DNA from: Isurus oxyrinchus
Taxonomy: Eukaryota
Reading direction: 5' to 3'
Length of the DNA stretch: 64,000 nt
Assembly: GCA_026770705.1 (NCBI GenBank)
Contig: JANJGN010000009.1
Span: forward strand, 163,680,001 to 163,744,000
Position 1 is the stretch's first letter; every line of letters begins with the position of its first letter. Positions 15,127 to 62,678 of this stretch are shown here, one piece after another. The position numbers and the translations under genes are program-made. The notes under the pieces were generated by a model. It searched no databases and had not been told where the DNA came from. It saw only the letters and a program-made list of their open reading frames with translations.

Positions 15127-15166
15127 ATGATGTGGATTTTGATTCTCCTCATTAGTTCTCTGCCCG
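15127..15166 (+). CDS. Gene A exon 1, signal peptide MMWILILLISSLP
   Basis: ATG at 15127, hydrophobic core, strong phase-1 donor G|GTGAGT at 15166/15167; joins in frame to VSGALW of the IgV exon. Identical in unit B. Confidence 0.88.
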
Positions 15167-18100
15167 GTGAGTGACAGACAGAGCTGGATGTTCCGATATT
15201 CTGAGTTGGTTTAACTCTCGTGCGCTGGTTATACAGGAGATGTTTAAATATTTGGAGACATGCAAAGGCACAAGAGAGGTCTTGGACACAGTGGGTAGCG
15301 TCACTGTATCTGAGCCAGAAGCTCTGTGTTTGAGTCCCACTTCTGTTCTTGTTGAGAATGGAAGGCGCGTTCTAACCAGGACCAACAGGTTGATTATCAA
15401 CCTGAAAATCTTCCAACAGACCGAAGGCTGGTGGGAAGAGGGTTTAAGATCCCAGTCCAACATGTTTGATGTGGAGTGGTGCCACTCATTCTGTTGTCTC
15501 CGGAGGTTAGTGACCTGTTCCGGGGAAAACAAGCTTTGGAAAGCAAAAGTAAACATGTGCTTTGTCTGCCGCATCCGTCTCTAGATGTGGGAAGTCTCCT
15601 AAGTCTAAAGGCACAAAATAGTCAGCAAAACCAAATGAGTAATAATTGTGAAGTATTTTATTACCCTGTGAATTAACTATCACACCATGGGAATAGTTAA
15701 CAAATAAACTGAACTGCATTATTAATTATGAATGATAAGTAAAGGAGAATTTAATTTTCAGAAAGCTATGCAAGCAACATTTTGAAAATGAAAACCTTTT
15801 TTAATTGGTAATTTTCAATATAATCTGATGTCCAGTATAGACTGAAGACTGCAGCGGTAATAATCCCACAAATAAAACATGTCCCAAGTTGGCAAATATT
15901 TCTGTTTTTGAAAGTACAGTTGATGAAATATTGTGTTATGAGGCTCTCTCAGTGACACTGTTCCTCACTGGTAGATGATTGGTCTACATCACTCTTCTCA
16001 TAAGTAGCCTTTTCTTGTTCATTCTTTAACTTTAAGAAACTAGATTTTGCTCATCACTCAGTATTGCCACCTCTCCATCATTTCGATGAATGTATTTTAT
16101 AACACACAATGTTAAACTCCCAGACCCATCTGCTCTTAACCACCTCCCCAAAATATTTTGCACCTCTAGCTGATCAATTTTATGCAGAATACTTGATGTA
16201 CTTATGGACAGGAAACTGAATCATGTTTCTGTCTGTTTGGCAATCTTCTTCTTTTCAATCCTTCCTCTTTCTGATCTGATCTCTTTCCCATTCCCTTTAC
16301 ATCTGTAACTTTCCCTGTATCTTTTTCCTTTTCTTCATTTCTCTCTAGCCATTTAATTATTTTCAATCTCTCTTTTGTTATTTTAGTGCAAACTCTTTCC
16401 CCACAGCATGAGTTTCTCTCCCAGCAAGGCCATTGGTCTCATGAATGTTCAAGTCAAGGCATCCAAATCCCTACCTCAGGAATCCATCCATACTGTAAGG
16501 CCACCTATCACACAACCTCGCAAACATTCAAGACCTTCAAATCCTACCTTTGGACATCCCTAACTCATTCAAGATCTGAACAACCCCTCCTGCAAGGACA
16601 CAAACCTCCTCTGCACCTCACCCACCTCAGATCAGAGCAGGGAACTGTCGGCTCCTGTGACCACCTCCACACTGCTCCCCAGCCGACTGCAAATCAGGCC
16701 TGTCAATCAGACTGGTTTCTGGCCGTGGAACCTCCTGATGATGTCAAACGCAGTCTAGGGTGAAACCTCAAAATATGAGGCAGAACCCCAATTTCCAGGT
16801 TCCCTCACTCTACCAGCCCCTGCCAATATGTCAAGAAAATGTCCCAATTATCTCACGAGTATATCATTGTCTGAGACGTGCTTTGGAACCACAGTGAGGC
16901 TCTGATAAGTGTCTATATGAATGATTACTCTCATCACAAACTTGATGGAATTTAACTCATTAAAATGCATCTGTTTGAATTAAGCAGTTATTTCCTGTTC
17001 AATTCCTGAAATGTTGTCTCCTCAGTTTCAGGTGCATTGTGGGCAAAAGAGAGAGTAACAGGAGTTGTGGGAAGAGCGATCACAATAGAATGTCACTATG
17101 ATGCACAGTGGTACAAGTCACATATAAAATATTGGTGTCGCGGCTGGACTCGCCAGTGTAATGTTGTAGCATCGACAAATTGGCGAAATGGAAGAATATC
17201 GGTCACAGATAACAAGTCACAAGGAATATTTATTGTTACTATGGAGAATCTTCACTCAGGAGATACAGGATGGTACAGCTGTGGTATTGAAGTAACTGGC
17301 CACAATCCAATGTTTAATGTAAAGCTACAAATATCTTACGGTACATTTCTTACTGTTTTTCTTTATTACTCTCGACTGAAATGTCTGCTCAATGTTTTAT
17401 CTGGGAGGAAACATGACAGCTCCGATATCCCGAGGCTCCACAGCAATGCAGAGTCTTAAACGTAAAGGGCAGTGGTCGGGAAATCCGACTCATGTTACCC
17501 AAACCCAATTCATGGCCTGTCCAACATGTCAGAATTGAACGTTACAAGTGAACTAAACGGAAATTGAGAAGTTGTTTTGATGGTAAAAGAAGCCTCTTTA
17601 TTAATTGTTGAGACATTGGGCTGGATATTCAGCCTCAAAGCGGGTAGGGGCAATTCGGAAAATTCCCCACTCGGCCTTGGAAGAAAGTGCCCACAAAGGT
17701 GGGATTCCCATTGCTGGGAGCTGTGCCCGGGCTGCAGTCTGGCCAGCCACACCAGGAAGAAATGCAGAGGCAGCCACAGGGGCTGCCGGCTGCGGAGACG
17801 GGCTGTTGAAAAGGCCCCTCCTTAATGCCCTTGGACTTTGTAACAGCTAAACTCAAAACACAAAGGCCCTTCACCCCTCACCCCTCACAGCCCACAAAGG
17901 GGGTGGATGTGAGGGGAAAATTTGTCATGAGGGGGCTTGGAGGTGGGTGGAAGTGTACAGCTTGAAGTCAGGAGCATGAGGGGGTATAAGGCGTGGGTAT
18001 AGCGATAGAGGGGGAACGAAGGGCCAAGCGGGTTGGATGGGGGTGTGACTTGACATAGCGGGCATGAGATGCACCTTTTGAACTTAGCTGTTAAAAGATC

Positions 18101-21100
18101 CCCTCATGCAGACCATTGTTTACAGCTCCTCTGAGGGGCTTTGGATTACGACTCATTCAAAACCTGGTCCGAGTCCATGAAAATTGCAGAGGAGTCGGAC
18201 GTCACTTTGGTCTGAAGGCTGCACAAAGCACAGGGTAGAGGCCCTGGACTGAGACACCAGCCTTTATCTTGTACAGAAAGTGTTCACATGTGAGTGACAT
18301 GAACATTGCTCATCAAAACAAGGAGCGATAGGCAGGGAGACATTCTTTGGAGGTTATTGACAATAATGAACAGTATGTACAAGTGATTAACACCCGTGCC
18401 CAGGACGTGAAACTACATCTCCTCAACCACGCGGTGTCTGGCGGCACCGTCGAGACCTTCTGTGCTCGGTGGGTGACCACGGGTGTTGGGGTCCTTTATC
18501 CAGCCTCTTAATCACATTTTGGTTTGATGTTGTAAGTGTCCTTTAAATCATGTCTTTGGTTTTGCAGTGACCCTAACTTAGGGGCTGCGTTTTATATTAT
18601 CCCTCATTTTGTTAATTTAGTTTATTGGGTTGGCTTTAAAAGAGCTACATCTTCTCAACTTTCCTAATCCTCCCGCTACATCTTGGTGCTCCGCAGACAT
18701 CCACAGTGGAGGTAAAGACAGTCTGCTGACTGCTATGCTCTGTCTGTGATAACTTTGGCGGGCGTCCTCTGGAGGCCTGAGGCCTGGAGGGCCCCGGCTT
18801 CCTTTCGAGGTCCTACTGTGTGGCATTAGCACCCTCCTTGTCCTGTGGACTGGGAGCTGTCAAGGTCACAGTAAGAGGGGAGTTACCAGGATGAATGGCC
18901 CCGGAGGGTACACATGTTGATCCTTCTCGCTATGGGTACCCAATGACCATTGGCTGAATCCTTGAGGAGCAGGTGTAGCTGGAGTGAGATCGAGCTGCCT
19001 GCACCCCTCTCGCATACACACTGTCAGGGGCCAACTATACATCAGCAATGGAGTTCAGCCCCGCAGCAGTGTAGGAACGATGCCCTGGACCAACGTCTCC
19101 ATTGCAGCTGCCATCCTACCAGTGTTGACCTCAGTGCATTGACATGCCGGCGCTATCACCTCAGAGGGCAGGCGGACGGACTCCTCCATTGTGCCTTGCA
19201 ATCTGAGGGGTGCAGCAGATATCCCTTCCTGATGTTCCCACGTTGGCCTTTCCAGTTCCTGCAACGGTGACATGACCAAATCCAGAAACGCGTCACCTGA
19301 CTCGACCTCAGCAAGTTTATGGCCTCCAGCTGCCCACTGAGTGCCGGACACCTGGGAAGCCCCTACCGCTGCCAGCTGTGGATCAGGCAGTGCGATTTGC
19401 TCACCAGCTGTGACCCTGAGTCTACTCTAAAGCTAGATCTCACCGAGGGGTGTGCCTCTGCGCTGGTGGAGGGTGTGGGTGAGGGCAGTGACGGTACATC
19501 AAGGAGGGTCCCTCCAGGTTCCTCTTCAGAGATTTCTTTGGGGATTACTTGGTGTCCCTGGGTCTCCATCGGCTGTTACCCAGATGTGCGTGTGGAAGCA
19601 AGTGGAAATATTTTGTGCATGGCAGTGGCCTGTGAAACAGGACACATCACTCACAGCATGGTTGTCTGATGGATGTTGCACTGCTGGACCCTCACTTGGC
19701 TGAGCACCGCCGACCTCACCGTCAGCACAGGATTGGTCCAGGCCGTTGCCGGCCAGCTGGATGGCTCTGTTTACAAAGTACTAGTACTGTTCAGGAACAT
19801 GATGTTCATATTTTCATACATGTCGCTGAATTTGTCAGTCACATTTACGCCTCTATTATCAACCAAAGAGCGGGATTGTCCCCGATTTGCACTAAGTGCG
19901 TTAGTGGGCGGGGGAATCGATGTTTTACCCACCGGCCACAATGGGGGGTTTTCAGGCTGCATCGTCCCAAACCCAACGCATTAGTTATGCATTCCCGGGA
20001 AACATACCATTTCCATGGTGAGTGGGATCTCATTCACCCCAAACACCATCATTTCACTGCTTCATCAGGCCCAGCACCATATGTAAAGTCCAGCCTCGTG
20101 CACACATCTCAGTGTTTCCAACCCAGGACCACTGCAGGGCAGATATCCCCAAGAGGCAAAAAGACTGTAGCTCCCAGGTTTAGTGAGCTGTCACTGCAAC
20201 ACATTGTGTACACTGTGGGGGCCCTGCTGTGATGTCCTCTACTCCCACTCTGGCTGCAGTATGGACAGCGCTGTGACCAACCAGGCCTGGGAGGCGGGGG
20301 CAGCAGTGGTATACCCACTGAATTTTATTAAGTTAACCCTCACTGTCAGATAATGTAGACAGTATGAAAAGTGTGGATGAGAAACCCTTAGAAACTGTCC
20401 TTGCTGGATGGAAACAAATACTGGAGAGATTGGAAATTTCTAAATGAAATGAGTGGATGCCTGATTGTTTTAGAGAATGAAATGCAGGTACAACAAATTT
20501 TTTAGGGATCTGAGGAGAGGGCTATCTTGCAATATGATGAAGTATAGAATATTGAGATTTTTAATTCAATTTACTTCACACTTTTTGGTCACCATATTAA
20601 CTGAAAATTTTATTTAAATGAGAGAAGGTCATCACCTAATCGTTTACTAATTGTGTTTAATTGTATGCAGTGGTGGCATTAATTGGTGATTCACTTGTGC
20701 ACCTATAAACAGATGCAGACTGAAACTGCGGGTGGTGGATTTAATTAGAATCACACAGTAAACAGCACTTTAAAACAGTTCCACAAGTCTTAACCTATCT
20801 AACCTCAGAGCTAATCTTTCTCTTTTCCGTTCAGCAACTAACACTATAGATTTAAAAAGCTATAGAAGTCCAATAATTTTACCACACAGTGCTTTCACAT
20901 TGGGGTGTCCACTGACAGCAACTGGGTCTTCAGATCTGGGCCTTGTTCACACTGTCTCCTGGGAATTCTGACCAGCTACCCTGCTGTCTTCAGGGAGATC
21001 TGGCCAACCATCCTGCTGTGTTCTGGGAGATCTAAGCAGCTACCCCCTCACATAGGCTTCAGTATTCCCTTAAATGTGTTTCTTCTCTTTCATCTCTCTT

Positions 21101-24100
21101 TGTCGTACCCAGTCTGTTCAGAAATGCTTTTATCCCAGGATTGATTAAATCAATCTTCACTTTAATTCTTAGACTTGTAAAAACAAACGTACCCTATCTT
21201 TATGTCACTTCATGACACCTTTTTACAACCTGCATATATCCCCCTTTGAACTAAAACAACTTAATTCAAACTATTCCTGTTATTGCTTCATGTACAAATC
21301 TGTTGAAGTTCTTTTGTGTTCATTAACATATCAAAACCACTTCTTACTGTTGACTTTTGACCCTATCCACTGATGAGGCAGTCCACGTCATGGAACCATA
21401 ACCTTAAATCTGGAGATAGGCTCGTCAGGGATGTCGGGAAGCACTTCTTCACGCAAAGTATAGCGGAAATCAGGAACACTCTCCTCAAAAAAGCTCTTTC
21501 GCTCAATTGAAAATTTCAAAACTGATTGACAGATTTTATCTGGTAGCAATATTCGGGTTATGGGACCCAGGTAGGTAAATGGACAGAAGATACTGGTCAG
21601 TTGGGATTTAATTGAATTGTGGAACAGGCTGAAGGGGCTGCATGTCCGAATCCCTTTTCCATGTTCTGGAGCCCCAGTTAATTTTTCAGTGGTCTGGGCC
21701 TTGTGAGTAACAATGTGCTGTGAAACAAGCTCACAAACAGTTAGCATTTCAAAGAGACACTTTCCAATCACCAGGCAAACTGTGACCTGTGTTGTTTCAG
21801 AGTACAGTTTGTGACAGTGAAAGCAGTGAAGGCCTGCCAAACCTCACTAAAAATGTTGGTGAAAGTGTCACTTTTCTCTGGCTAATCCCTTGATCAAAGA
21901 GGGAATTTTAATTCCCCTCCCCCATCCTGCATCGTGTTGAAGCATGATGGGATTTGCTGGATCCAGAACCTTCTCCAGCACGGCTTGTGATTCAGGAGAC
22001 ACACGAAAGCTTCACCCCCACCCCCAGGCAAATGTTTCATACAATTTCTCCCTCCCCATGATTGGCCAATCCTGCCCCAAGCAGCAAAGTCACCCTGACT
22101 CCCTCCTCGCTGCTGTGCTCCGAGGCAACATTCCCACCAATTTCCAAATTTTTACCATAACGTTCCTACTTGGAAACCAGCCAAACATTCAATCAGTGTG
22201 CAAGAATTCTGGTAAGATTTTGCTGCTAAATTCAGCACAAACTCAACATTCCTGGTATTTCCAGCTTTCTCACCACCCCACACACAGTCCCCCCTCTCGT
22301 CTCCACGTACCAGGGTTGAAGTGTTCTATCGCAGCATGCAGAGAACCAGAGCCAATCGCATTTACATTCTTATCCAAAGCCACAAAACATGTAACCGATA
22401 TCTGACAACATTTTGCCCTCATTTTACCCTTTGCTTTTCTAAGATTCTCTCCAACTAATTCACATTCAACTCACAAACAATGAAACAGCATTGGAGGCTC
22501 ACTACCAGCTACGAAGAGATATTGTTCACCATGATATTCATGTTAACATACTCTCAGTATCATAGCTGCTGTTCTGATCTGGAGACCTGATTTGTTCTGA
22601 TATAATGGCTGAAAGGGTAACTCAGGCCTCTAAGAGGATGGAGAGATATGGGGATGGATTTTTAAAAAGTATGCTATCAGGATTAGAGATGGGTGGGTGT
22701 GAAATTTGACACCGCTGGTCTCCATGCCAATTTACTGTTACAATCTCAAGCCCGAAACATTTAGAAAGCGAGCGGCTTGCAGTCAAGTGGTGGGCAGCTA
22801 ACTTAGGAAATAACATTTACCAAAGGGGCCAATTAAAGACCCATTCCTGCACCCACTGGGATTTCATTCAGCAATGATAGCAGACCACATTGCCCCTTCA
22901 GGATCATGGCCCGGCAGTTGCCGGGTTTTGAAACATAAAATAAACTTACCTGGACTTTCCCCTTGCTGTCTCCATGCTCAGGTCAGCAACTCCCACCTCA
23001 CCTGGTGAGGCCCTCTAGCATCAGGAGCCCGCCCACTGTCCCTGATTGGGTGGTGAGCCCAGTTCCAGGCTTTTGATTGGCTGGAACATTGAAAATTGTA
23101 TTGGGCATGCCTAAAGAATGGTGAATGGTGTCAGGACCTGAAACTATCTCCCATGTCCAGTTCGCAAACCCAAATTTAACATCCACCCCATAGAGTGGTA
23201 GATGTGTTGGTGAGATTCCAACATGACAGAGCCTGGCTGAGATGAAGTGCAAAGTTTGAAGAGTATTTGATTATTAAATGTTCAGTACTTGAATGTTTCT
23301 TTGTTTCCAACAGAACCCGTGTCTGTTCCTGTGCTTAGATTTTCATCACCACCACATGTCTCATGTTCTGGTGGTTCAGTGTCCGACTCCTGTGAGTCTG
23401 TCCAGGGATCCCTTCCCATTCAGTACACATGGTATGAAAAGACCCTGTCTGAAGATTCAAAGATCTCTGACAGCAATAAACTGGATCTACATTGTCAATC
23501 CTTCAAACAGCAACATCATCAATATTACTGTAGAGCCTCGAATAATCAGGGAGTAAAATCCAGTGACACTGTCACTGTTAACTTAACACTCATGAATGTA
23601 ACAACGAAAAGCTGCAGTTATGTGATACAAATTGGAAACATTGGTAAGTGTTACTTTCTACAAACAATGTGGTGAATGAATGTTTTAAATTCATGTCTAT
23701 CCAAACTGGTCACTGTTTCAGTTCCTTCAGTCAATCTGAGAAATTGCAACTGGCCAAATTCACTCTCTCTGGTTCCTCAAACATTCTGAACAAGGTCACT
23801 AAGTTGCATTTTTCATGAAAAATGGACAGGATCAGAAAATATCCCCAAAACATGCAAAAATATTGCCGAATCTCCAATAAACCCATCGAATCAAAATAGC
23901 ATTTGATTGACAGAGCTTTCATAAAGCAATTTGTCTATTTCCAGCAGATGGAATTGTGAAATGCAACCTCCAACTGTTGTGTCCTAGTTTGGGAAGGATA
24001 TCACTGATAGAATAGAGAAGAATTGAATTAAAATGAACCCTTGGATGAGAGGCTTTAGTCATGAGGAAAGTATCATCACAACTGAGGTGAATGACCAGCT

Positions 24101-27100
24101 GGAGGGCGTGGAAATTGTTAGAAATTTGGATAAGGTAACTCTAACTATTTCCACTAGTCAGTGAGTCAACAACAAGAGAGCATTAACTTTAAAATTATCA
24201 CTAAAAGGACAAAGGGAGAAATTTGGAGAATTTTATTGATGCAAACTGTTTTTAGGACATGGAATGCCCAACTGAAATAAGTTTACAAACAAATTTAATA
24301 ATAGATTTTAAAAGGGAAACAAATGTATGAGGGTGTGGGAAAAGGACAATGAAATGGAATTAAATGAGGAGATCATTCAGAGAACCAGCATTCGAGCGAT
24401 GGGCTGAATTCCCTCCCCTGTGTTGTAAAAATTCCATCACTCCAGACAAAATCTCAACTTATCCTGTATAAAAAATTAACTATTCCTTCCCCATAAAACA
24501 ATGACCCTGGTTCTGAAACAAGGAGGACTTTAGCCTATTTGAATGTAGCGGTTCAATTTTCTGCAGAGTGGGTGCAGCATGTTCACCGAGAAACACCAAC
24601 ATGGGCACAAAACAAAGAGAATCACATTTTCCCCTGAGCAGCAGGAGACAGGAATTTACATATGCAAATATATTGACTCTGGTCATGTGGTCTCTTGCCT
24701 CAGTTGTCAGGGAAGAAGGGTGGAATTTTACACCCCCATTGCGCCAGGGACTGGGCTGTAAAATGCAGCCAGCCATTCTAAACTCCATGCACTCCAGCAG
24801 GACCATAAAATCCCACTGTCACAAGCCTCAGACCAAAGGCTGTCAGCAGCAGGTAGAAATTACACCTGTAAACTGTGTTTGTACTGGAGTTGTCAGCAGG
24901 GACTCAGTCGCACTCTGACCTTTGATGACAGTATTTTGTAGGTTCAAGTTTCCCTTAAGAGTTAAAATTCAGGCTGATACCACTGTCCAGCACTGAGGTA
25001 GTGCTATACTGGTGGTGGTGCTGCTGTGTAGATGAGGTGTTAAACTGAGGATCCACATCCCCCTTAGGTAGATGTAAACAATTCCAGGGTATTATTCACA
25101 GAATAGGGAAGTTCTCCTGGTGTCCTTGAAGCCTTTATTCCTCAACCAATACACACAAATTGGGAGCAGGAGCAGGCTATTTGGTCTTTTGAGCCTGTTA
25201 ATGTCACTAAAAACAGATCATCTAGTGAATGTTTTACTGATGTTTGTGGGGCTTTGTTGTGTACGAATTAACTTTCACGTTTTCCGATATTAAAACTTTG
25301 GCTTTACTTCAGAAAAGTACTTAATAGGCTCTGAAGCACTTTGGGATATCTCAAGGTTGTGAAAGGTGATGAATCAACACAACTGATTTCTTACCTTTTG
25401 AAACAAACGACTTATTAAAATACATCTGAACCATATGCAAACTGGAGGGGGGGGGAGGGGGAGGGAGGAGCCAGTCCCAGCAGCAAGGTGGGTCATTATT
25501 TTTAAATGGACAGAAAATCACTGGCAGGTTTGAGACATTCAGCATCAGTGGGTGAAGATTCCCATCTTTACTGCAAGCTCAGAAAACTGCCCCCAAAGGA
25601 CAGAAAGTGACCATTGCCAGTATTTGGATGTGACTGTTTAATGTGTTCACATGAAATTCTTGTCAAGAAAGTGTATCTCTGATTGTAGTCCACCAACCTG
25701 AGCCCTTACCTGGCCCACTTCTAACTCTGTCCCACCAACTCTCAGATATAGGAAAGAAAGTGGAATTACCAGTAAAGATAGACCACCAGGTATCAGCAAA
25801 CTCTCCACTTGTGACCAGAGAGGGGTAAATTACACAGAAATCAATTCTACCAGCCAGTCTTTTCCTCAAGTAATGAGGTTCCATTTGACAATGATGCTCT
25901 CTCAGTTGAATACAAGTGAAAATGAGGTGAATCTCAATGTTATTCTCTTGTTTCAACAGGACCTGAGTATTGTTACGAAGCTTGTACAACAGTATCACCA
26001 ACTATCACACAACCCAGGAACGCAGTTGGGAATCCCAGAATTAGGACACATCCGCCATTTTTAAAGGGCTCTTGAATCAACCCAAGTTGGTGAAATCCAG
26101 GCCGTCACTTTGGTCTGAAGGCTGCACAAAGCACAGGGTAGAGGTCCTGGACTGAGACACCTGCCTTTATCTTGTACAGAAAGTTTTCACATGTGAGTGA
26201 CATGAACATTGCTCATCAAAACAAGGAGCGATAGGCAGGGAGACATTCTTTGGAGTTTATTGACAATAATGAACAGTATGTACAAGTGATTAACACCCGT
26301 GCCCAGGACGTGAAACTACATCTCCTCAACCAGGCGGTGTCTGGCGGCACCGTCGAGACCTTCTGTGCTCGGTGGGTGACCATGGGGGGTTGGGATGCTT
26401 TATCCACCCTCTTAATCACACTTTAGTTTGATGTTGTAAGTTTCCTTTAAATCCTGTCTTTGGTTTTGCAGTGACCCTAACTTAGGGGCTGCGTTTTATT
26501 TTGTCCCTCATTTTGTTAATTTAGTTTATTTGGTTGACTTTAAAAGAGCTACATCTTCTCAACTTTCCTAATCCTCCCGCTACATCTTGGTGCTGCACAG
26601 ACATCCACAGTGGAGGTAAAGACAGTCTGCTGACTGCTATGCTCTGTCTGTGATAACTTTGGCGGGCGTCCTCTGGAGGCCTGAGGCCTGGAGGGCCCCG
26701 GCTTCCTTTCGAGGTCCTACTGTGTGGCATTAGCACCCTCCTTGTCCTGTGGACTTGGAGCTGTCAAGGTCACAGTAAGAGTGGAGTTACCAGGATGAAT
26801 GGCCCCAGAGGGTACACATGTTGATCCTTCTCGCTATGGGTACCCAAGGGCCCGTGTCTGAATTCTTGAGGAGCAGGGGTAGCTGGAGTGAGATCGAGCT
26901 GCCCGCACCCCTCTCACATACACACTGTCAGGGGCCAACTATGCATCAGCAATGGAGTTCAACCCCACAGCAGTGTAGGAACGGTGCCCTGGACCAACGT
27001 CTCCATGGCACCTGCCATCCTACCAGTGTTGACCTTGGTGCAATGACATGCCAGCGCTATCACCTCAGACTGCAAGTGGACGGATTCCTCCATATTAACT

Positions 27101-36375: not shown

Positions 36376-36596
36376 AATCGATTTTCTCATCAAATAATTT
36401 TGACCATTAAATTAGTGGAGCAATCAAAAAGCAAAATGATGGCTGCGAACTTCAATTTGTATATCTACATCCTGACAATAATTTCTCTGTTTGCTGCCTT
36501 AGTGTCTACACAACTTTATTTCTTGTTTTAAGACTATCAAATTCTTTAAGAAATAAGCAACTTGAAAGGTTCATTTATTGGAAACCAATCGCTTCA

Positions 36597-50283: not shown

Positions 50284-50323
50284 ATGATGTGGATTTTGAT
50301 TCTCCTCATTAGTTCTCTGCCCG
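50284..50323 (+). CDS. Gene B exon 1, signal peptide
   Basis: Identical to 15127-15166, donor GTGAGT. Confidence 0.88.
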
Positions 50324-53300
50324 GTGAGTGACAGCCAGAGCTGGATGTTCCGATATTCTGAGTTGGTTTAACTCTCGTGCGCTGGTTATACAGGAGATGT
50401 TTAAATATTTGGAGACATGCAAAGGCACAAGAGAGGTCTTGGGCACAGTGGGTAGTGTCTCTGTATCTGAGCCAAAAGCTCTGTGTTTGAGTCCCACTTC
50501 TGTTCTTGTTGAGAATGGAAGGCGCGTTCTAACCAGGACCAACAGATTGATTATCAACCTGAAAATCTTCCAACAGACCGAAGGCTGGTGGTAAGAGGGT
50601 TTAAGATCCCAGTCCAACATGTTTGATGTGGAGTGGTGCCGCTCATTCTGTTGTCTCCGGAGGTTAGTGACCTGTTCCAGGGAAAACAAGCTTTGGAAAG
50701 CAAAAGTAAACATGTGCTTTGTCTGCCGCATCCGTCTCTAGATGTGGGAAGTCTCCTAAGTCTAAAGGCACAAAATAGTCAGCAAAACCAAATGAGTAAT
50801 AATTGTGAAGTATTTTATTACCCTGTGAATTAACTATCACACCATGGGAATAGTTAACAAATAAACTGAACTGCATTATTAATTATGAATGATAAGTAAA
50901 GGAGAATTAAATTTTCAGAATGCTATGCAAGCAACATTTTGAAAATGAAAACCTTTTTTAATTGGTAATTTTCAATATAATCTGATGTCCAGTATAGACT
51001 GAAGACTGCAGCGGTAATAATCCCACAAATAAAACATGTCCCAAGTTGGCGAATATTTCTGTTTTTTAAAGTACAGTTGATGAAATATTGTGTTATGAGG
51101 CTCTCTCAGTGACACTGTTCCTCACTGGTAGATGGTTGGTCTACATCACTCTTCTCATAAGTAGCCTTTTCTTGTTCATTCTTTAACTTTAAGAAACTAG
51201 ATTTTGCTCATCACTCAGTATTGCCACCTCTCCATCATTTCGATGAATCTATTTTATAACACACAATGTTAAACTCCCAGCCCCATCTGCTCTTAACCAC
51301 CTCCCCAAAATAGTTTGTGCCTCTAGCTGATCAATTTAATGCAGAATACTCGATGTACTTATGGACAGGAAACTGAATCATGTTTCTGTCTGTTTGGCAA
51401 TCTTCTTCTTTTCAATCCTTCCTCTTTCTGATCTGATCTCTTTCCCATTCCCTTTTCATCTGTAACTTTTCCTGTATCTTTTTCCTTTTCTTCACTTCTC
51501 TCTAGCCATTTAATTATTTTCAATCTCTCTTTTGTTATTTTAGTGCAAACTCTTTCCCCACAGCATGAGTTTCTCTCCCAGCAAGGCCATTGGTCTCATG
51601 AAAGTTCAAGTCAAGGCATCCAAATCCCTACCTCAGGAATCCATCCATACTGTAAGGCCACCTATCACACAACCTCGCAAACCTTCAAGACCTTCAAATC
51701 CTACCTTTGGACATCCCTAACTCATTCAAGATCTGAACAACCCCTCCTGCAAGGACACAAACCTACCCCGCACCCCACCCATCTCAGATCAGAGCAGGGA
51801 ACTGTCGGATCCTGTGACCCCCTCCACACTGCTCCCCAGCCGACTGCAAATCAGGCCTGTCAATCAGGCTGGTTTCTGGCTGTGGAACCTCCTGATGATG
51901 TCAAACGCAGTCTAGGGTGAAACCCCAAAATATGAGGCAGAACCCCAATTTCCAGGTTCCCTCACTCTACCAGCCCCTGCCAATATGTCAAGAAAATGTC
52001 CCAATTATCTCACGAGTATATCATTGTCTGAGACGTGCTTTGGAACCACAGTGAGGCTCTGATAAGTGTCTATATGAATGATTACTCTCATCACAAACTT
52101 GATGGAATTTAACTCATTAAAATGCATCTGTTTGAATTAAGCAGTTATTTCCTGTTCAATTCCTGAAATGTTGTCTCCTCAGTTTCAGGTGCATTGTGGG
52201 CAAAAGAGAGAGTAACAGGAGTTGTGGGAAGAGCGATCACAATAGAATGTCACTATGATGCATGGAGGTACAAGTCACATATAAAATATTGGTGTCGCGG
52301 CTGGACTCGCCAGTGTAATGTTGTAGCATCAACAAATAGGCCAAATGGAAGAATATCGGTCACAGATAACAAGTCACAAGGAATATTTATTGTTACTATG
52401 AAGGATCTTCACTCAGGAGATACAGGATGGTACAGCTGTGGTATTGAAGCAACTGGCCACGATCCAATGTTTAATGTAAAGCTACAAATATCTTACGGTA
52501 CATTTCTTACTGTTTTTCTTTATTACTCTCGACTGAAATGTCTGCTCAATGTTTTATCTGGGAGGAAACATGACAGCTCCGATATCCCGAGGCTCCACAG
52601 CAATGCAGAGTCTTAAAGGTAAAGGGCAGAGGTCGGGAAATCCGACTCATGTTACCCAAACCCAATTCATGGCCTGTCAAACATGTCAGAATTGAACGTT
52701 ACAAGTGAACTAAACGGAAATTGAGAAGTTGTTTTGATGGTAAAAGAAGCCTCTTTATTAATTGTTGAGACATTGGGCTGGATATTCAGCCTCAAAGCGG
52801 GTAGGGGCAATTCAGAAAATTCCCCGCTCGGCCTTGGAAGAAAGTGCCCACAAAGGTGGGATTCCCATTGCTGGGAGCTGTGCCCGGGCTGCAGTCTGGC
52901 CAGCCACACCAGGAAGAAATGCAGAGGCAGCCACAGGGGCTGCCGGCTGCGGAGACGGGCTGTTTAAAAGGCCCCTCCTTAATGCCCTTGGACTTTGTAA
53001 CAGCTAAACTCAAAACACAAAGGCCCTTCACCCCTCACCCCTCACAGCCCCCAAAGGGGGTGGATGTGAGGGGAAAATTTGTCATGAGGGGGCTTGGAGG
53101 TGGGTGGAAGTGTACAGCTTGAAGTCAGGAGCATGAGGGGCTATAAGGCGTGGGTATAGGGATAGAGGGGGAACGAAGGGCCAAGCGGGTTGGATGGGGG
53201 TGTGACTTGACATAGCGGGCATGAGATGCACCTTTTGAACTTAGTTGTTAAAAGATCCCCTCATGCAGACCAGTGTTTACAGCTCCTCTGAGGGGCTTTG

Positions 53301-56300
53301 GACTACGACTCAATCAAAACCTGGCCCGAGTCCATGAAAATTGCAGAGGAGTCGGACGTCACTTTGGTCTGAAGGCTGCACAAAGCACAGGGTAGAGGCC
53401 CTGGACTAAGACACCTGCCTTTATCTTGTACAGAAAGTGTTCACATGTGAGTGACATGAACATTGCTCATCAAAACAAGGAGCGATAGGCAGGGAGACAT
53501 TCTTTGGAGTTTATTGACAATAATGAACAGTATGTACAAGTGATTAACACCCGTGCCCAGGACGTGAAACTACTTCTCCTCAACCACGCGGTGTCTGGCA
53601 GCACTGTTGAGACCTTCTGTGCTCGGTGGGTGACCACGGGGGTTGGGGTCCTTTATCCAGCCTCTTAATCACATTTTGGTTTGATGTTGTAAGTGTCCTT
53701 TAAATCATGTCTTTGGTTTTGCAGTGACCCTAACTTAGGGGCTGCGTTTTATATTATCCCTCATTTTGTTAATTTAGTTTATTGGGTTGGCTTTAAAAGA
53801 GCTACATCTTCTCAACTTTCCTAATCCTCCCGCTACATCTTGGTGCTCCGCAGACATCCACAGTGGAGGTAAAGACAGTCTGCTGACTGCTATGCTCTGT
53901 CTGTGATAACTTTGGCGGGCATCCTCTGGAGGCCTGAGGCCTGGAGGGCCCCGGCTTCCTTTCGAGGTCCTACTGTGTGGCATTAGCACCCTCCTTGTCC
54001 TGTGGACTGGGAGCTGTCAAGGTCACAGTAAGAGGGGAGTTACCAGGATGAATGGCCCCGGAGGGTACACATGTTGATCCTTCTCGCTATGGGTACCCAA
54101 TGGCCATTGGCTGAATCCTTGAGGAGCAGGTGTAGCTGGAGTGAGATCGAGCTGCCTGCACCCCTCTCGCATACACACTGTCAGGGGCCAACTATACATC
54201 AGCAATGGAGTTCAGCCCCGCAGCAGTGTAGGAACAATGCCCTGGACCAACGTCTCCATGGCAGCTGCCATCCTACCAGTGTTGACCTCGGTGCAGTGAC
54301 ATGCCGGCGCTATCACCTCAGAGTGCAGGCGGATGGACTCCTCCATTGTGCCTTGCAATCTGAGGGGTGCAGCAGATATCCCTTCCTGATGTTCCCGCGT
54401 TGGCCTTTCCAGCTCCAGCAACTGTGACATGACCAAATCCAGAAACGCGTCACCTGACTCGAACTCAGCAAATTTATGGCCTCCAGCTGCCCACTGAGTG
54501 CCGGACACCTGGGAAGCCCCTGCCGCTGCCAGTTGTGGATCAGGCAGTGCAATTTGCTCACCAGCTGTGACCCTGAGTCTACTCTAAAGCTAGATCTCAC
54601 CGAGGGGTGTGCCTCTGCACTGGTGGAGGGTGTGGGTGAGGGCAGTGATGGTACAGCAAGGAGGGTCCCTCCAGGTTCCTCTTCAGAGATTTCTTTGGGG
54701 ATTACTTGGTGTCCCTGGTTCTCCATCGGCTGTTTCCCAGATGTGCGTGTGGAAGCAAGTGGAAATATTTTGTGCATGGCAGTGGCCTGTGAAACAGGAC
54801 ACATCACTCACAGCATGGTTGTCTGATGGATGTTGCACTGCTGGACCCTCACTTGGCTGAGCAACGCAGACCTCACCGTCAGAACAGGATTGGTCCAGGC
54901 CGTTGCCGGCCAGCTGGATGGCTCTGTTTACAAAGTACTAGTACTGTTCAGGAACATGATGTTCATATTTTCATACATGTCGCTGAATTTGTCAGTCACA
55001 TTTACGCCTCTATTATCAACCAAAGAGCGGGATTGTCCCCGATTTGCACTAAGTGCGTTAGTGGGCGGGGGAATTGATGTTTTACCCACCGGCCACAATG
55101 GGGGGTTTTCAGGCCGCATCGTCCCAAACCCAACGCATTAGTTATGCATTCCCGGGAAACATACCATTTCCATGGTGAGTGGGATCTCATTCACCCCAAA
55201 CACCATCATTTCACTGCTTCATCAGGCCCAGCACCATATGTAAAGTCCAGCCTCGTGCACACATGTCAGTGTTTCCAACCCAGGACCACTGCAGGGAAGA
55301 TATCCCCAAGAGGCAAAAAGACTGTAGCTCCCAGGTTTAGTGAGCTGTCACTGCAACACAATGTGTACACTGTGGGGGCCCTGCTGTGATGTCCTCTACT
55401 CCCACTCTGGCTGCAGTATGGACAGCGCTGTGACCAACCAGGCCTGGGAGGCGGGGGCAGCGGTGGTATACCCACTGAATGTTATTAAGTTAACCCTCAC
55501 TGTCAGATAATGTAAACAGTATGAAAAGTGTGGATGAGAAACCCTTAGAAACTTCCTTGCTGGATGGAAACAAATACTGGAGAGATTGGAAATTTCTAAA
55601 TGAAATGAGTGGATGCCTGATTGTTTTAGAGAATGAAATGCAGGTACAACAAATTTTTTAGGGATCTGAGGAGAGGGCTATCTTGCAATATGATGAAGTA
55701 TAGAATATTGAGATTTTTAATTCAATTTGTTTCACACTTTTTGGTCACCATATTAACTGAAAATTTTATTTAAATGAGAGAAGGTCATCACCTAATCGTT
55801 TACTAATTGTGTTTTATTGTATGCAGTGGTGGCATTAATTGGTGATTCACTTGTGCACCTATAATCAGATGCAGACTGAAACTGCGGGTGGTGGATTTGA
55901 TTAGATTCACACAGTAAACAGCACTTTAAAACAGTTCCACAAGTCTTAACCTATCTAACCTCAGAGCTAATCTTTCTATTTTCCGTTCAGCAACGAACAC
56001 TGTAGATTTAAAAAGCTATAGAAGTCCAATAATTTTACCACACAGTGCTTTCACATTGGGGTGTCCACTGACAGCAACTGGGTCTTCAGATCTGGGCCTT
56101 GTTCACACTGTCTCCTGGGAATTCTGACCAGCTACTCTGCTGTCTTCAGGGAGATCTGGCCAACCATCCTGCTGTGTTCTGGGAGATCTAAGCAGCTACC
56201 CCCTCACATAGGCTTCAGTATTCCCTTAAATGTGTTTCTTCTCTTTCATCTCTCTTTGTCGTACCCAGTCTGTTCAGAAATGCTTTTTTCCCAGGATTGA

Positions 56301-59300
56301 TTAAATCAATCTTTACTTTAATTCTTAGACTTGTAAAAACAAACTTACCCTATCTTTATGTCACTTCATGACACCTTTTTACAACCTGCATATATCCCCC
56401 TTTGAACTAAAACAACTCAATTCAAACTATTCCTGTTATTGCTTCATGTACAAATCTGTTGAAGTTCTTTTTTGTTTATTAACATATCAAAACCACATCT
56501 TATTGTTGACTTTTGACCCTATCCACTGATGAGGCAGTCCACGTCATGGAACCATAACCTTAAATCTGGAGATAGGCTCGTCAGGGATGTCAGGAAGCAC
56601 TTCTTCACGCAAAGTATAGTGGAAATCAGGAACACTCTCCTCAAAAAAGCTCTTTAGTTCAATTGAAAATTTCAAAACTGAATGACAGATTTTATCTGGT
56701 AGCAATATTCGGGTTATGGGACCCAGGTAGGTAAATGGACAGAAGATACTGGTCAGTTGGGATTTAATTGAATTGTGGAACAGGCTGAAGGGGCTGCATG
56801 TCCGAATCCCTTTTCCATGTTCTGGAGCCCCAGTTAATTTTTCAGTGGTCTGGGCCTTGTGAGTAACAATGTGCTGTGAAACAAGCTCACAAACAGTTAG
56901 CATTTCAAAGAGACACTTTCCAATCACCAGGCAAACTGTGACCTGTGTTGTTTCAGAGGACAGTTTGTGACAGTGAAAGCAGTGAAAGCCTGCCAAACCT
57001 CATTAAAAATGTTGGTGAAAGTGTCACTTTTCTCTGGCTAATCCCTTGACCAAAGAGGGAATTTTAATTCCCCTCCCCCATCCTGCATCGTGTTGAAGCA
57101 TGATGGGATTTGCTGGATCCAGAACCTTCTCCAGCACGGCTTGTGATCCAGGAGACACACGAAAGCTTCACCCCCACCCCCAGGCAAATGTTTTATACAA
57201 TTTCTCCCTCCCCATGATTGGCCAATCCTGCCCCAAGCAGCAAAGTCACCCTGACTCCCTCCTCGCTGCTGTGCTCCGAGGCAACATTCCCACCAATTTC
57301 CAAACTTTTACCATAACGTTCCTACTTGGAAACCAGCCAAACATTCAATCAGTGTGCAAGAATTCTGGTGAGATTTTGCTGTTAAATTCGGCACAAACTC
57401 AACATTCCTGGTATTTCCAGCTTTCTCACCACCCCACACACAGTCCCCCCTCTCGTCTCCACGTACCAGGGTTGAAGTGTTCTATCGCAGCATGCAGAGA
57501 ACCAGAGCCAATCACATTTACATTCTTATCCAAAGCTACAAAACATGTAACCGATATCTGACAACATTTTGCCCTCATTTTACCCTTTGCTTTTCTAAGA
57601 TTCTCTCCAACTAATTCACATTTAACTCACAAACAATGAAACAGCATTGGAGGCTCACTACCAGCTACGAAGAGATATTGTTCACCATGATATTCATGTT
57701 AACATACTCTCAGTATCAGAGCTGCTGTTCTGATCTGGAGACCTGATTTGTTCTGATATAATGGCTGAAAGGGTAACTCAGGCCTCTAAGAGGATGGAGA
57801 GATATGGGGATGGATTTTTAAAAAGTATGGGGTCAGGATTAGAGATGGGTGGGTATGAAATTTGACACCGCTGGTCTCCATGCCAACTTACCATTACAAT
57901 CTCAAGCCCGAAACATTTAGAAAGCGGGTGGCTTGCAGTCAAGTGGTGGGCAGCTAACTTAGGAAATAACATTTACCAAAGGGGCCAATTAAAGACCCAT
58001 TCCTGCACCCACTGGGATTTCATTCAGCAATGCAAGCAGACCACATTGCCCCTTCAGGATCATGGCCCGGCAGCTGCCGGGTTTTGAAACATAAAATAAA
58101 CTTACCTGGACTTTCCCCTTGCTGTCTCCATGCTCAGGTCAGCAACTCCCACCTCACCTGGTGAGGCCCTCTAGCATCAGGAGCCCGCCCTCTGTCCCTG
58201 ATTGGATGGTGAGCCCAGTTCCAGTCTTTTGATTGGCTAGAACATTGAAAATTGCAGTGGGCATGCCTAAAGAATGGTGAATGGTGTCAGGACCTGAAAC
58301 TATCTCCCATGTCCAGTTCCCAAACCCAAATTTAACATCCACCCCATAGAGTGGTAGATGTGTTGGTGAGATTCCAACATGGCAGAGCCTGGCTGAGATG
58401 AAGTGCAAAGTTTGAAGAGTATTTGATTATTAAATGTTCAGTATCTGAATGTTTCTTTCTTTCCAACAGAACCCGTGTCTGTTCCTGTGCTTAGATTTTC
58501 ATCACCGCTAAATGTCTCATGTTCTGGGAGTTCAGTGTCCGTCTCCTGTGAGTCTGTCCAGGGATCCCTTCCCATTCCGTACACATGGTATGAAAAGACC
58601 CTGTCTGAAGATTCAAAGATCTCTGACACCAATAAACTGGATCTACATTGTCAATCCTTCAAACAGCAACATCATCAATATTACTGCACAGCCTCAAATA
58701 ATCAGGGAGTAAAATCCAGTGATACTGTCACTGTTAACTTAACACTCATGAATGTAACAACGAAAAGCTGCAGTTATGTGATACAAATTGGAAACATTGG
58801 TAAGTGTTACTTTCTACAAACAATGTGGCGAATGAATGTTTTAAATTCATGTCTATCCAAACTGGTCACTGGTTCAGTTCCTTCAGTTTATCTGAGAAAT
58901 TGCAACTGGCCAAATTCACTCTCTCTGGTTCCTCAAACATTCTGAACAAGGTCACTAAGTTGCATTTTTCATGAAAAATGGACAGGATCAGAAAATATCC
59001 CCAAAACATGCAAAAATATTGCCGAATCTCCAATAAACCCATCGAATCAAAATAGCATTTGATTGACAGAGCTTTCATAAAGCAATTTGTCTATTTCCAG
59101 CAGATGGAATTGTGAAATGCAACCTCCAACTGTTGTGTCCTAGTTTGGGAAGGATATCACTGATAGAATAGAGAAGAATTGAATTAAAATGAACCCTTGG
59201 ACGAGAGGTTTTAGTCATGAGGAAAGTATCATCACAACTGAGGTGAATGACCAGCTGGAGGACGTGGAAATTGTTCGAAATTTGGATAAGGTAACTCTAA

Positions 59301-62300
59301 CTATTTCCACTAGTCAGTGAGTCAGCAACAAGAGAGCATTAACTTTAAAATTATCACTAAAAGGACAAAGGGAGAAATTTGGAGAATTTTATTGATGCAA
59401 ACTGTTTTTAGGACATGAAATACCCAACTGAAATAAGTTTACAAACAAATTTAATAATAGATTTTAAAAGGGAAACAAATGTATGAGGGTGTGGGAAAAG
59501 GACAATGAAATGGAATTAAATGAGGAGATCATTCAGAGAACCAGCATTCGAGTGATGGGCTGAATTCCCTCCCCTGTGTTGTAAAAATTCCATCACTCCA
59601 GACAAAATCTCAACTTATCCTGTCTAAAAAATTAACTATTCCCTCCCCATAAAACAGTGACCCTGGTTCTGAAACAAGGAGGACTTTAGCCTATTTGAAT
59701 GTAACGGTTCAATTTTCTGCAGAGTGGGTGCAGCATGTTCACCGAGAAACACCAACATGGGCACAAAACAAAGAGAATCACATTTTCACCTGAGCAGCAG
59801 GAGACAGGAATTTACATATGCAAATATATTGACTCTGGTCATGTGGTCTCTTGCCTCAGTTGTCAGGGAAGAAGGGTGGAATTTTACACCCCCATTGCGG
59901 CAGGGACTGGGCTGTAAAATGCAGCCAGCCATTCTAAACTCCATGCACTCCAGCAGGACCATAAAATCCCACTGTCACAAGGCTCAGACCAAAGGCTGTC
60001 AGCAGCAGGTAGAAATTACACCTGTAAACTGTGTTTGTACTGGAGTTGTCAGCAGGGACTCAGTTGCACTCTGACCTTTGATGCCAGTCTTTTGTAGTTA
60101 CAAGTTCCCCTTAAGAGTTAAAATTCAAGCTGATACCATGATCCAGCACTGAGGTAGTGCTATACTGGTGGTGGTGCTGCTGTGTAGATGAGGTATTAAA
60201 CTGAGGATCCACATCCCCCTTAGGTAGATGTAAACAATTCCAGGGTATTATTCACAGAATAGGGAAGTTCTCCTGGCGTCCTTGAAGCCTTTATTCCTCA
60301 ACCAATACACACAAATAGGGAGCAGGAGCAGGCCATTTGGTCTTTTGAGCCTGTTAATGTCACTACAAAACAGATCATCTAGTGAATGTTTTACTGATGT
60401 TTGTGGGGCTTTGCTGTGTACGAATTAACTTCCACGTTTCTTGATATTAAAACTGTGGCTTTACTTCAAAAAAGTACTTCATAGGCTCTGAAGCACTTTG
60501 GAATATCCCAAGGTTGTGAAAGGTGATGAATCAACACAACTTGTTTCTTACTTTTTGAAACAAACCATTTATTAAAATACATCTGAACCAATTATCTGAG
60601 TGCAAACTGCAGGGGGGGGAGGGGGAGGGAGGAGCCAGTCCCAGCAGCAAGGTGGTCATTATAATTAAATGGTCAGAAAATCACTGGCAGGTTTGAGACA
60701 TTCATGGTCAGTGGGTGAAGGTTGTCATCTTTACTGCAAGCTCAGAAAACTGCCCCCAAAGTGCAGAAAGTGACCATTGCCAGTATTAGGATGTGACTGT
60801 TTAATGTGTTCACATGAAATTCATGTCAAGAAAGTGTATCTCTGGATTGCAGTCCACCAACTTGAGCCCTTATCAGGCCCACTAGTAACTCTGTCCCACC
60901 AACTCTCAGATATAGGACAGAAAGTGAAATTACCAGTAAAGATAGATCACCATCAGGTATCAGCAACCTCTCCACTTGTGACCAGAGAGGGGTAAATTAC
61001 ACAGAAATCAATTCTACCAGCCAGGCTTTTCCTCAATTAATGAGGTTCCATTTGACAATGATGCTCTCTCAGTTGAATACAAGTGAAAATGAGGTGAATC
61101 TCAATGTTATTCCCTTGTGTCAACAGGACGTGAGTATTGTTGTGAAGCTTGTACAAGAGTATCACCAACTACATATTTGACAAGTACAGATATAATTTCC
61201 ACTACCAATCGAGCCACAACTTCAGATCCCGAAAATGCTGAAAGGTACAATGTTCTCATGGATTGGCATTGCTTCCATATGTGAGAGATACAATTGGCCA
61301 AAGGAGTGAAAGTTGTTCATTAATTGTAAAGTAGCTCATCAGAATGGAAATGGTGGCTGGGTTTATATCATGCTGTTGTGTTAGCTTCTTAATGAGGCTG
61401 CATTTTTCTGTTGGAAAATACAAGCAAGGAGTGAGCTTTTCCATTGTGTTGCCGCTCAGATGGTGTTTTTTGCCTTATTCACCTTGATTACTTCACCGCT
61501 AAGGTAATCTCACAGTGTGTGAGGAGTTGTACTTGTCAAACTTACCTTGCTGCTGTCTACACTGACAGAGTACTTGTATTTGGGCTGATGAAAAGGAAGA
61601 ATTAGCGTGATATATCTGCACATCCCTTGGTTTCACTAATGAGAGACATCTTGCAACTCTGGTCCCATTTCCATATTATTAGCCTAAGCTGTTGACAATA
61701 AGTAGCAGAAATTGTAGTCCGATGTAAACACTCAGGAATCAGGTCTTTGAAGTTACAATGGTGATAAAGAGAAAATGCCAACTAAATGTCAAACAGAAAG
61801 AGGGACAGTTGGAAATGGACAGCAGGTATGTCCGCAGCTGTGGAGAAAATAAACACGTTCATGGTTTGGGTGCAGACACTTCTTCAGAATTCTAGTCCAC
61901 ACACGAAGCGAAGCAGGTCCACTCACCCCACAGATCCCAACTGAGCTGCTGAATGTTTCCAGAATCTTCTGTTTTCCATTCATATTTCTAGCACATGCAG
62001 TGCTCTTACTTTTATCCAGATTATTGTCAATGATTTAAAAAGGATTGAAAGTCTATGGTCTGAATTTTCCGCTCGGCGGGGGTGGGGGTGGGTAGAGCGG
62101 GAGCGAGCACGGGCAGCTGTGGACCCCATCGCCATCCACCATCGGGTTTTTGACGCCATTTTGCGCGGGCGGCCAATTTAGGCCATCCCAGCGTATTTCC
62201 CGGCTCCCGAGGATAGCGGCAGTGGGCGAGAAGCGGGGAGTGTGCACAGACAACCGGGTCCAATGGTGACCCAGCGGCCTGTTTAAATGAAGGCCTGGCA

Positions 62301-62678
62301 GCCTGTTCCAGCTGCTCACAATGGCCAGTGCAAAGAATTTTCACTTACAATTTAGCTTAATATTACAGTTAGACATTATGGACATGCTAAAGAAATTTGC
62401 TTCGTTTGATTTTTATCTAATGATCATGAAGTTGATAAGTAAAACTTTAGCTGATTCTTTCAGCTAAAGTCCCTTGTCTACTTTATGTTGCTGCAAAAAA
62501 TTACAGTGTAAAGCAGAGAGTCATGTTTCAAAAATGAAACAGTCTCATTTCATTTAAATGGTTTGATATTTCTTCTCTTTTGCTCAGTTACATTATCTGG
62601 GATGTGATACGCTGGGTGCTCTTTACTCTCCTGGTGATTTGTGCTGTTTCAGGCACATGGTGTACGAGAAAATCTAAG
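50284..62678 (+). CDS. Gene B: paralogous CD300/pIgR-like receptor (V-C2-stalk-TM). Exons 50284-50323, 52183-52497, 58470-58799, 61127-61244, 62588-62678; last exon beyond the window
   Basis: All five exons are open, with splice sites and phases conserved relative to gene A. Only one IgC2 exon. Confidence 0.88.
52183..52497 (+). CDS. Gene B exon 2, IgV domain
   Basis: Same motifs as gene A; 10 nt and 8 aa differences. Confidence 0.93.
58470..58799 (+). CDS. Gene B exon 3, IgC2 domain
   Basis: 330-nt open exon, AG/GTAAGT boundaries, YYCTASN. Confidence 0.9.
61127..61244 (+). CDS. Gene B exon 4, stalk (GREYCCEACTRVSPTTYLTSTDIISTTNRATTSDPENAE)
   Basis: 118 nt, same splice sites as 31223-31340. 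Confidence 0.85.
62588..62678 (+). CDS. Gene B exon 5, transmembrane segment (SYIIWDVIRWVLFTLLVICAVSGTWCTRKSK)
   Basis: Copy of 32352-32442 with one Cys-to-Tyr change. Confidence 0.88.

Follow-up and report, generated by a model that had tools for sequence, protein, structure and literature searches.

The receptors that come closest to those described here are the MDIRs (modular domain immune-type receptors) from the clearnose skate, which were reportedly described from cDNAs in a 2006 paper by Cannon et al.; genomic structure and recent tandem duplication are said not to be part of that description. In the searchable literature, almost nothing on MDIRs was found beyond a citing SITR paper (PMC3031540). 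Here, we analysed a 64 000-nucleotide stretch of the shark Isurus oxyrinchus (assembly GCA_026770705.1, contig JANJGN010000009.1, positions 163,680,001 to 163,744,000 of the forward strand; hereafter the window), which carries two tandem genes, A and B. We put the probability at roughly 0.85 that these are two copies of a shark MDIR-family gene for a type I membrane protein, and this figure includes the reading of the protein as an adaptor-coupled activating receptor. The skate MDIRs combine the same immunoglobulin (Ig) V and C2 domain types in the same order, with a modular domain number, and MDIR5 has the same W-x-V-x-R-W transmembrane (TM) motif followed by a short acidic tail. Apart from skate versus shark origin, a difference lies three residues before the Arg of this motif, where batoids have Lys, Thr or Asn and sharks have Asp.

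The closest database protein is P0210, a ‘Fc receptor-like protein 6’ of Carcharodon carcharias (an XP-type Gnomon model of 275 aa), with identities of 84% for the V domain, 81% and 85% for the first and second C2 domains (C2a and C2b) of gene A, and 76% for the stalk. The residues at its exon junctions are identical to those of the window genes (QISY-E-P.., IGNIG-PEY..). It belongs to another species or paralogue, however, its name is automatic, and its model stops after the stalk in RHSRNQILRA with no TM segment.

Three better known receptor groups each share one part of this build. CD300/CMRF35 (CLM) molecules have the same extra C-x6-C disulphide and (K)YWC motif, but consist of a single V domain with no C2 and show low V identity to the window genes, in which one or two C2 exons follow in frame. 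In activating CD300 members the TM has a charged residue and the tail is short; their paired counterparts bear immunoreceptor tyrosine-based inhibitory motifs (ITIMs). The polymeric Ig receptor pIgR gives the best V match among solved structures, with V-only pIgR-like proteins next in line as relatives at 35-41% identity; pIgR itself, however, is built of two to five V-type domains, lacks C2 and has a long sorting tail behind an uncharged TM, whereas the window genes have one V exon each and a tail of ∼18 residues. For the C2 domain, the best sequence match is FCRL5, and D2 of FCRLA is a structural neighbour (Z 7.7). The FCRL proteins lack an N-terminal V domain of the pIgR/CD300 type and have tails with ITIMs or with activation motifs (ITAMs), whereas the tail of gene A, FQTLNGSDPQSLT, is devoid of tyrosine. 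A 2014 survey did not find pIgR and FcRL homologues in sharks (PMC4016189).

Membership in the MDIR family

Searches were run exon by exon, and full-length comparisons were made with database proteins. Among 1.84 billion representative proteins, 2276 matched the V exon, and the nearest of these were elasmobranch proteins with 60-69% identity, many of the same V-C2-stalk-TM build. Further family searches gave two named matches from the clearnose skate, ‘Modular domain immune-type receptor 2’ (P0173) and ‘receptor 5’ (P0156). Residues 16-118 of MDIR2 align with the window V exon at 61% identity (E 2e-44) and residues 122-220 with the window C2 exon at the same identity (E 7e-41), so that the V-C2 order is the same in both. 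MDIR5 is a V-C2-V-C2 protein with the TM segment SWKVGRWLLF... and then a short tail. Among 232 retrieved proteins, 91 combine V and C2 domains (VC 52, VCVC 15, VCC 4, and also VCV and VCVCVC), and all those with a retrievable source come from sharks, skates or rays, 23 species in total. The RefSeq labels of these relatives include pIgR-like, CMRF35-like molecule, Fc receptor-like 2/5/6, CXADR-like, A33-like and ‘uncharacterized’. In a search with the relative P0111, none of the listed matches is marked as encoded by the window. Carcharodon and Cetorhinus supply the nearest proteins, which places the genome among the sharks, probably in the lamniforms or a nearby order, in agreement with the shark origin that an earlier note on this DNA, made from the letters alone, had proposed.

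The domain phylogeny suggested in that note points the same way. In a quick V-domain tree (103 columns, with weak inner branches), a clade of 61 elasmobranch V domains with an SH-aLRT (Shimodaira-Hasegawa-like approximate likelihood-ratio test) support of 97 holds both window genes together with MDIR2 and MDIR5. Genes A and B pair with each other beside Carcharodon P0210 (support 96), and batoid and shark sequences form separate subclades. The MDIR clade leaves out the V-only pIgR-like proteins found in rays, bichirs and a turtle, and the C2 tree agrees with the V tree. The window genes also share the distinguishing traits of MDIRs: a pIgR/CD300-like V domain joined to a C2 domain like those of Fc receptor homologues, a variable domain number (V-C2 in gene B, exons for V-C2-C2 in gene A), and a W-x-V-x-R-W motif in common with MDIR5, beside relatives (MDIR2, P0205 and P0209) that have an uncharged TM and ITIM-like tyrosines. 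The window itself holds two copies of what may be a large multigene family. On these comparisons, the genes are new members of a named family and no new kind of receptor. The suggestion that the receptors might be uncharacterised is thus not upheld, given the 61% identity per domain to skate MDIR2 and the TM motif of MDIR5.

The V exons encode the canonical Cys20-Cys83 pair and an additional Cys35-x6-Cys42 pair behind KYWC. In a sequence search against the Protein Data Bank (PDB), pIgR is the best match to the V exon (4.6e-40 overall, with D1 and D5 on top), followed by CLM-1 (7.6e-17; CLM-1/CD300 matches range from E 1e-12 to 1e-17) and TREM2. The second Cys pair and these pIgR and CLM-1/CD300 matches bear out the assignment of the V domain to the CD300/pIgR type. 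The C2 exons match the Pfam families Ig_3, Ig_2 and Ig_C17orf99 at or slightly below the cut-offs, and the protein atlas leads to Ig_C17orf99 and FCRL2 clusters. Among solved structures, the C2b exon is closest to FCRL5 (3.3e-47 overall, best single domain 5e-8, membrane-proximal domains), with GSLPI-Y and YYCTA-N motifs in common. An AlphaFold model of C2b (predicted local distance difference test score, pLDDT, 84) has the C2-set sandwich. With this model, Foldseek gave zero matches at E <= 0.001, and the neighbours found by VIA-align are generic C2-set domains, namely CD22 d3 (Z 9.8), FCRLA D2 and Fc-gamma-RI (Z 7.5). The ‘FcR-like’ label given earlier to the C2 domain therefore holds by sequence (FCRL5) and not by fold, which is C2-set without being specifically FcR-like, CD22 d3 being nearest. 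The combination of a pIgR/CD300-type V and an FCRL-like C2 in one gene stands as had been proposed, the exons being in frame.

Exon structure and transcripts of genes A and B

The exons of both genes are listed in Table 1. All are bordered by AG acceptors and GT donors, each is open in the required frame, and the phases (1, 1-1, 1-1, 1-2, 2-0, 0) are compatible. A tblastn search with 11 family proteins gave matches in the window to these exons only. The leaders of genes A and B are identical and match those of the relatives P0111 and P0228; the intron between V and C2 in gene A is 5973 bases long, and the 3′ untranslated region (UTR) of this gene ends at ∼36387, just after an AATAAA located ∼110 bases past the tail exon. 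Self-BLAST, exon borders and phases confirm what the earlier note had described, two recent tandem paralogues whose exons for leader, IgV, IgC2, stalk and TM join in frame, with the addition that the paralogues differ in domain number; the limits set there, 15127 and 62678, are exactly the ATG of gene A and the end of the TM exon of gene B.

Table 1. Coding exons of genes A and B and associated features, in window positions
Feature	Positions	Strand	Phases	Remarks
Gene A leader	15127-15166	+	1	MMWILILLISSLP then one base; ATG 15127, GT donor 15167
Gene A IgV	17032-17340	+	1-1	Pfam V-set E 1e-9
Gene A C2a (first IgC2)	23314-23643	+	1-1	Pfam Ig_3, Ig_2, Ig_C17orf99
Gene A C2b (second IgC2)	28567-28896	+	1-1	Within internal duplication 26005-31271
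Gene A stalk	31223-31340	+	1-2	Ser/Thr/Pro-rich, one Cys; transcript-supported
Gene A TM	32352-32442	+	2-0	CIIWDVIRWVLFTLLVICAVSGTWCTRKSK; Asp and Arg within hydrophobic span
Gene A tail	36221-36262	+		13 codons, FQTLNGSDPQSLT, then stop; transcript-supported
Gene B leader	50284-50323	+		Same as gene A leader
Gene B IgV	52189-52497	+		Pfam V-set E 1e-10
Gene B IgC2 (single)	58470-58799	+		Pfam Ig_C17orf99, Ig_3, Ig_2
Gene B stalk	61127-61244	+		Three Cys
Gene B TM	62588-62678	+		Tail exon past window end
Partial stalk-exon copy	25960-26009	+		At internal-duplication breakpoint; self-BLAST, translation
Assembly gap	44024-44190	.		N run, intergenic, head of CA-rich minisatellite

Four small sequencing runs, presumed to be RNA and picked by means of 26 sampled words, were compared with positions 30450-36449 of the window. 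A contig of 1117 nucleotides (nt; X5 record 17) aligns to 31222-31338, 32350-32440 and 36219-36387 in succession, with both joints at GT..AG and at the predicted sites. The same two junctions are present in X9, a run from a second organism, in which record 29 spans 36225-36333. Spliced transcripts, the absence of which the earlier note had named as a ground for rejecting its interpretation, are therefore found for the path from stalk to TM to tail, and contigs from two of the four runs back the TM and tail exons. The 740 nt of X5 record 17 that lie 5′ of the stalk correspond by arithmetic, and not by alignment, to a leader of 40, a V exon of 309, one C2 exon of 330 and ∼61 nt of 5′ UTR. At its four listed differences, the stalk of this contig carries the letters of gene B, and X5 record 17 is thus most likely the mRNA of gene B or of a B-like allele. 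The introns in 30450-36449 are otherwise covered by repeat fragments only. A very high contig depth was seen at 33450-33650 in all four RNA-like runs (maximum 11768, in X9), presumably from an expressed repeat. One X9 contig joins the TM donor at 32442 to 33514 at GT..AG, which would make an alternative or aberrant last exon.

The partial stalk-exon copy retains an acceptor but lacks a matching donor; it reads into the former intron (to ∼26120) and reaches a stop after 37 codons (PEYCYEACTTVSPTITQPRNAVGNPRIRTHPPFLKGS, then stop). If spliced after C2a, it would yield a secreted V-C2 form.

Gene A might instead be decaying, with the internal duplication and the truncated stalk exon disturbing its splicing so that only B-type transcripts are made. 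The sole long contig has the stalk letters of gene B and room for one C2 domain, and the partial stalk exon offers an intact acceptor that leads to a stop after 37 codons, as such a reading would expect. All seven exons of gene A are open and their splice sites intact, however, V-C2-C2 relatives exist (for example, P0081), and the RNA runs compared are small and were found with 26 sampled words. We therefore consider decay of gene A unlikely, although it is an alternative to be taken seriously.

Transmembrane helix, tail and predicted signalling

The most hydrophobic windows of 19 to 23 residues in the TM segment CIIWDVIRWVLFTLLVICAVSGTWCTRKSK include both Asp5 and Arg8. Of the retrieved shark and ray proteins, 35 contain the motif W-x-V-x-R-W-(V/L)-L-F, MDIR5 among them, with 36 occurrences in total. 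Its Arg is invariant, whereas the residue three positions before it varies, being D in sharks and K, T, N, S or M in batoids. Forms with this arginine mostly have tails of 11-20 residues, many of the acidic-Ser-Asp-Pro-x-Ser-Leu kind. In the window genes, the cytoplasmic part comprises ∼18 residues, TRKSK from the TM exon and the 13 codons of the tail exon, with no tyrosine. Paralogues with an uncharged TM, in contrast, carry several ITIM-like tyrosines (P0205, P0209, P0075, P0068 and MDIR2). The coexistence of short-tailed Arg-TM forms with ITIM-bearing uncharged forms gives the usual picture of paired receptors.

Two side observations concern the same segments. The window tail (NGSDPQSL, with a GSDPQSL core) has an SDPxSL-like motif that is common to the tails of P0178, P0154, P0157 and P0156, from sharks to rays. 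A W-x-V-L-R-W TM motif is also carried by P0061 and by the pIgR-like cluster of P0238 from Narcine, represented by P0008, which reads as five V domains and no C2, and the arginine helix may thus predate the V-C2 module.

Fc-alpha-RI, LILRA and OSCAR pair with FcR-gamma by means of an Arg placed close to the helix's outer end, and mammalian Fc-alpha-RI, LILRA and the activating CD300 and TREM receptors signal through an Asp-bearing ITAM adaptor. By analogy with these receptors, we infer that the window genes encode adaptor-coupled activating receptors. The TM and tail do look of the activating type named in the earlier note, with an Arg within the span and a short tail with no tyrosine, and two of four runs back the exons concerned. 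The predicted product would be a type I protein with a signal peptide, a V domain, one C2 domain in gene B or potentially two in gene A, a stalk of variable Cys content, the Arg-bearing TM and the ∼18-residue tail. In such a protein, the V domain would act as the ligand-binding head, with ligand bound by loops like the complementarity-determining regions (CDRs) of antibodies; the TM Arg would pair with an Asp-bearing ITAM adaptor and thereby pass the signal to the cell, and the ITIM-bearing paralogues would be the inhibitory counterparts.

Several points weigh against this reading. The searchable literature yielded no ligand, adaptor or signalling data for any member of the family, and no signalling adaptor is encoded within the 64-kb window. 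Only ∼3-8 residues separate the Arg from the outer end of the hydrophobic span, and it could snorkel in part. The 2006 MDIR paper is said to have classed MDIR5, which has the motif, as a receptor with no typical signalling motifs. The junctions from leader to V and from V to C2 are drawn from homology (RefSeq models and cloned skate cDNAs) together with the contig-length arithmetic. As the sole long transcript has the gene B stalk letters, the expression of gene A and the use of both its C2 exons are predicted from the exons. Finally, the 2014 survey, made on older genomes, found no FcR-gamma chain in sharks (PMC4016189).

Some of these points would favour genes that are MDIR members but are not coupled to an adaptor, the Arg and Asp being boundary residues and the protein a non-signalling binder or decoy, or one that signals through its SDPxSL-like tail. 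Such a reading draws on the position of the Arg near the outer end of the span, on the freedom of the residue three upstream (D, K, T, N, S or M) and on the acidic-Ser-Pro motif kept in the short tails of sharks and rays. MDIR5 was reportedly not classed as activating in the 2006 paper. The invariance of the Arg in 36 of 36 occurrences suggests constraint, however, and the best windows of 19 to 23 residues include it; moreover, forms with the motif are mostly short-tailed, whereas those with an uncharged TM are ITIM-like, which is the pattern of paired receptors. On balance, we regard uncoupled receptors as fairly unlikely and retain the adaptor-coupled activating reading.

Tandem duplication and divergence of the two genes

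Comparison of the window with itself by self-BLAST defines the duplication units and repeat blocks. A tandem segmental duplication of ∼37.6 kb, with blocks that are 95-98% identical, consists of unit A (1-37586) and of unit B (37587-64000), which the end of the window truncates, and the sequence at the 37586/37587 junction is uninterrupted. Homology between the units is present from window base 1, and the array therefore probably extends upstream. Each unit has features of its own: a 2.6 kb insertion at 10716-13344 is found in unit A only, with an empty site in unit B, as is an internal 5.3 kb duplication (26005-31271) that contains the second C2 exon, whereas ∼330 bases at 61610-61942 of unit B are absent from unit A. 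The assembly gap at 44024-44190, directly preceded by CTGCTGAAATGCACTTTA and followed by a CA-rich minisatellite, lies 7.8 kb past the stop of gene A and 6.1 kb upstream of the ATG of gene B. Unit A has its own gap at the exact homologous point (6498-6830), with flanks in the same order and orientation. The gap at 44024-44190 touches no exon or reading frame, and only the intergenic distance is uncertain.

The two units could also be an artefact of assembly in which two divergent haplotypes of one locus were placed end to end. The gap at the same homologous position in both units would fit this, as would the best DNA runs, which hold 0.69 of the sampled words of the gene A V exon. A divergence of 2-5% is high for haplotypes, however; the insertion and the 5.3 kb duplication in A only, and the extra ∼330 bp in B, argue for separate copies, and the continuous junction and the homology from base 1 suggest an array that extends upstream. 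An artefact is thus very unlikely.

Other repeated elements were noted in the window. The insertion at 10716-13344 carries an open reading frame of 717 aa (11208-13361, minus strand) that matches reverse transcriptase (RVT_1) and GIY-YIG, as is characteristic of Penelope-like retroelements. On either strand of a 27-bp minisatellite at 4370-5070 and 41900-42850, whose array is longer in unit B, long frames stay open (EAEVEAVTEE..., SASSVTAST..., PPQPPQSL...); they are most likely spurious. A dispersed repeat of ∼1.15 kb occurs at 845-1989, 18645-19772, 26100-27093, 38431-39583 and 53802-54929, upstream of the genes as well as within the V-C2 intron, the intergenic copies being 76-77% identical to the intronic ones.

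Between genes A and B, non-synonymous changes outnumber synonymous ones in the V exon (9 to 1), the C2 exon (5 to 2) and the stalk exon (12 to 1), whereas the TM exon has one of each. The 10 nucleotide differences in the V exon comprise 9 within 8 replaced codons and 1 silent change. The ratio of non-synonymous to synonymous rates (dN/dS) is 1.6 overall, with 2.4 for V and 4.2 for the stalk, and does not reach significance (p 0.5); for the V exon against its flanks, p is 0.065. The stalk exon is the most divergent part, with 11.4% against ∼4% in the flanks (p 0.006), and it encodes one Cys in A, three in B and two in the partial copy, a change that could alter the formation of disulphide-linked dimers. 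Of the eight V residues that are replaced, six (25, 26, 50, 51, 87 and 91) lie in stretches aligned with CDR1-3 of pIgR D1, the loops having been defined after the data were seen; a concentration of replacements in the CDR-like loops is suggestive. It is through these D1 loops that pIgR binds polymeric Ig, and their CDR-like counterparts are where the V exons of A and B vary most. The three C2-bearing repeats are about equidistant, with shared informative sites in a mosaic, star-like pattern, and thus both a gain of a C2 domain by A and a loss by B fit. On the proposed history, a recent segmental duplication would have made A and B, which would later have diverged by internal duplication of the C2 exon, transposon insertions and mostly replacement changes in the V loops and stalk. 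The birth-and-death evolution proposed earlier is plausible in this light, whereas diversifying selection lacks statistical support (dN/dS 1.6, p 0.5).

That a CD300/pIgR V exon was newly joined to an FcR-like C2 in this shark lineage, making a new lineage-specific hybrid family, might be suggested by the inconsistent RefSeq names of relatives and by the 2014 survey with no shark pIgR or FcRL homologues (PMC4016189), but it is extremely unlikely, since the skate MDIR2 and MDIR5 cDNAs, deposited with the 2006 paper, have the same V-C2 module, which occurs in 23 shark and batoid species, the window V domains nest in the MDIR clade and an identity of 61% over both domains of MDIR2 makes convergence implausible. 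Of the lineage-specific hybrid put forward in the earlier note, only the A/B duplication is lineage-specific.

A broader and quite unlikely proposal is that the short-tailed Arg-TM MDIRs form a conserved activating subfamily of elasmobranchs, in which W-x-V-x-R-W and the SDPxSL-like tail would mark coupling to a signalling partner as yet undescribed for cartilaginous fish, and the rapidly changing V loops and the stalks of variable Cys content would track pathogens or polymeric immunoglobulin as ligands. If this were true, the arrangement ancestral to the separate pIgR/CD300 (V) and FCRL (C2) receptors would survive in the V-C2 module. The MDIR genes are reasonable candidates for functional work, and the known picture of this kind of system is unchanged by the finding. 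What the window adds is a genomic model, backed by transcripts, for shark MDIR genes of the activating type, with exon phases, a 37.6 kb tandem duplication and a change in domain number by exon duplication. The assorted RefSeq labels (pIgR-like, CMRF35-like, FCRL5, CXADR-like) all cover one elasmobranch-wide family and, contrary to the 2014 survey (PMC4016189), V domains of the pIgR/CD300 type and FCRL-like C2 domains are present in cartilaginous fish.

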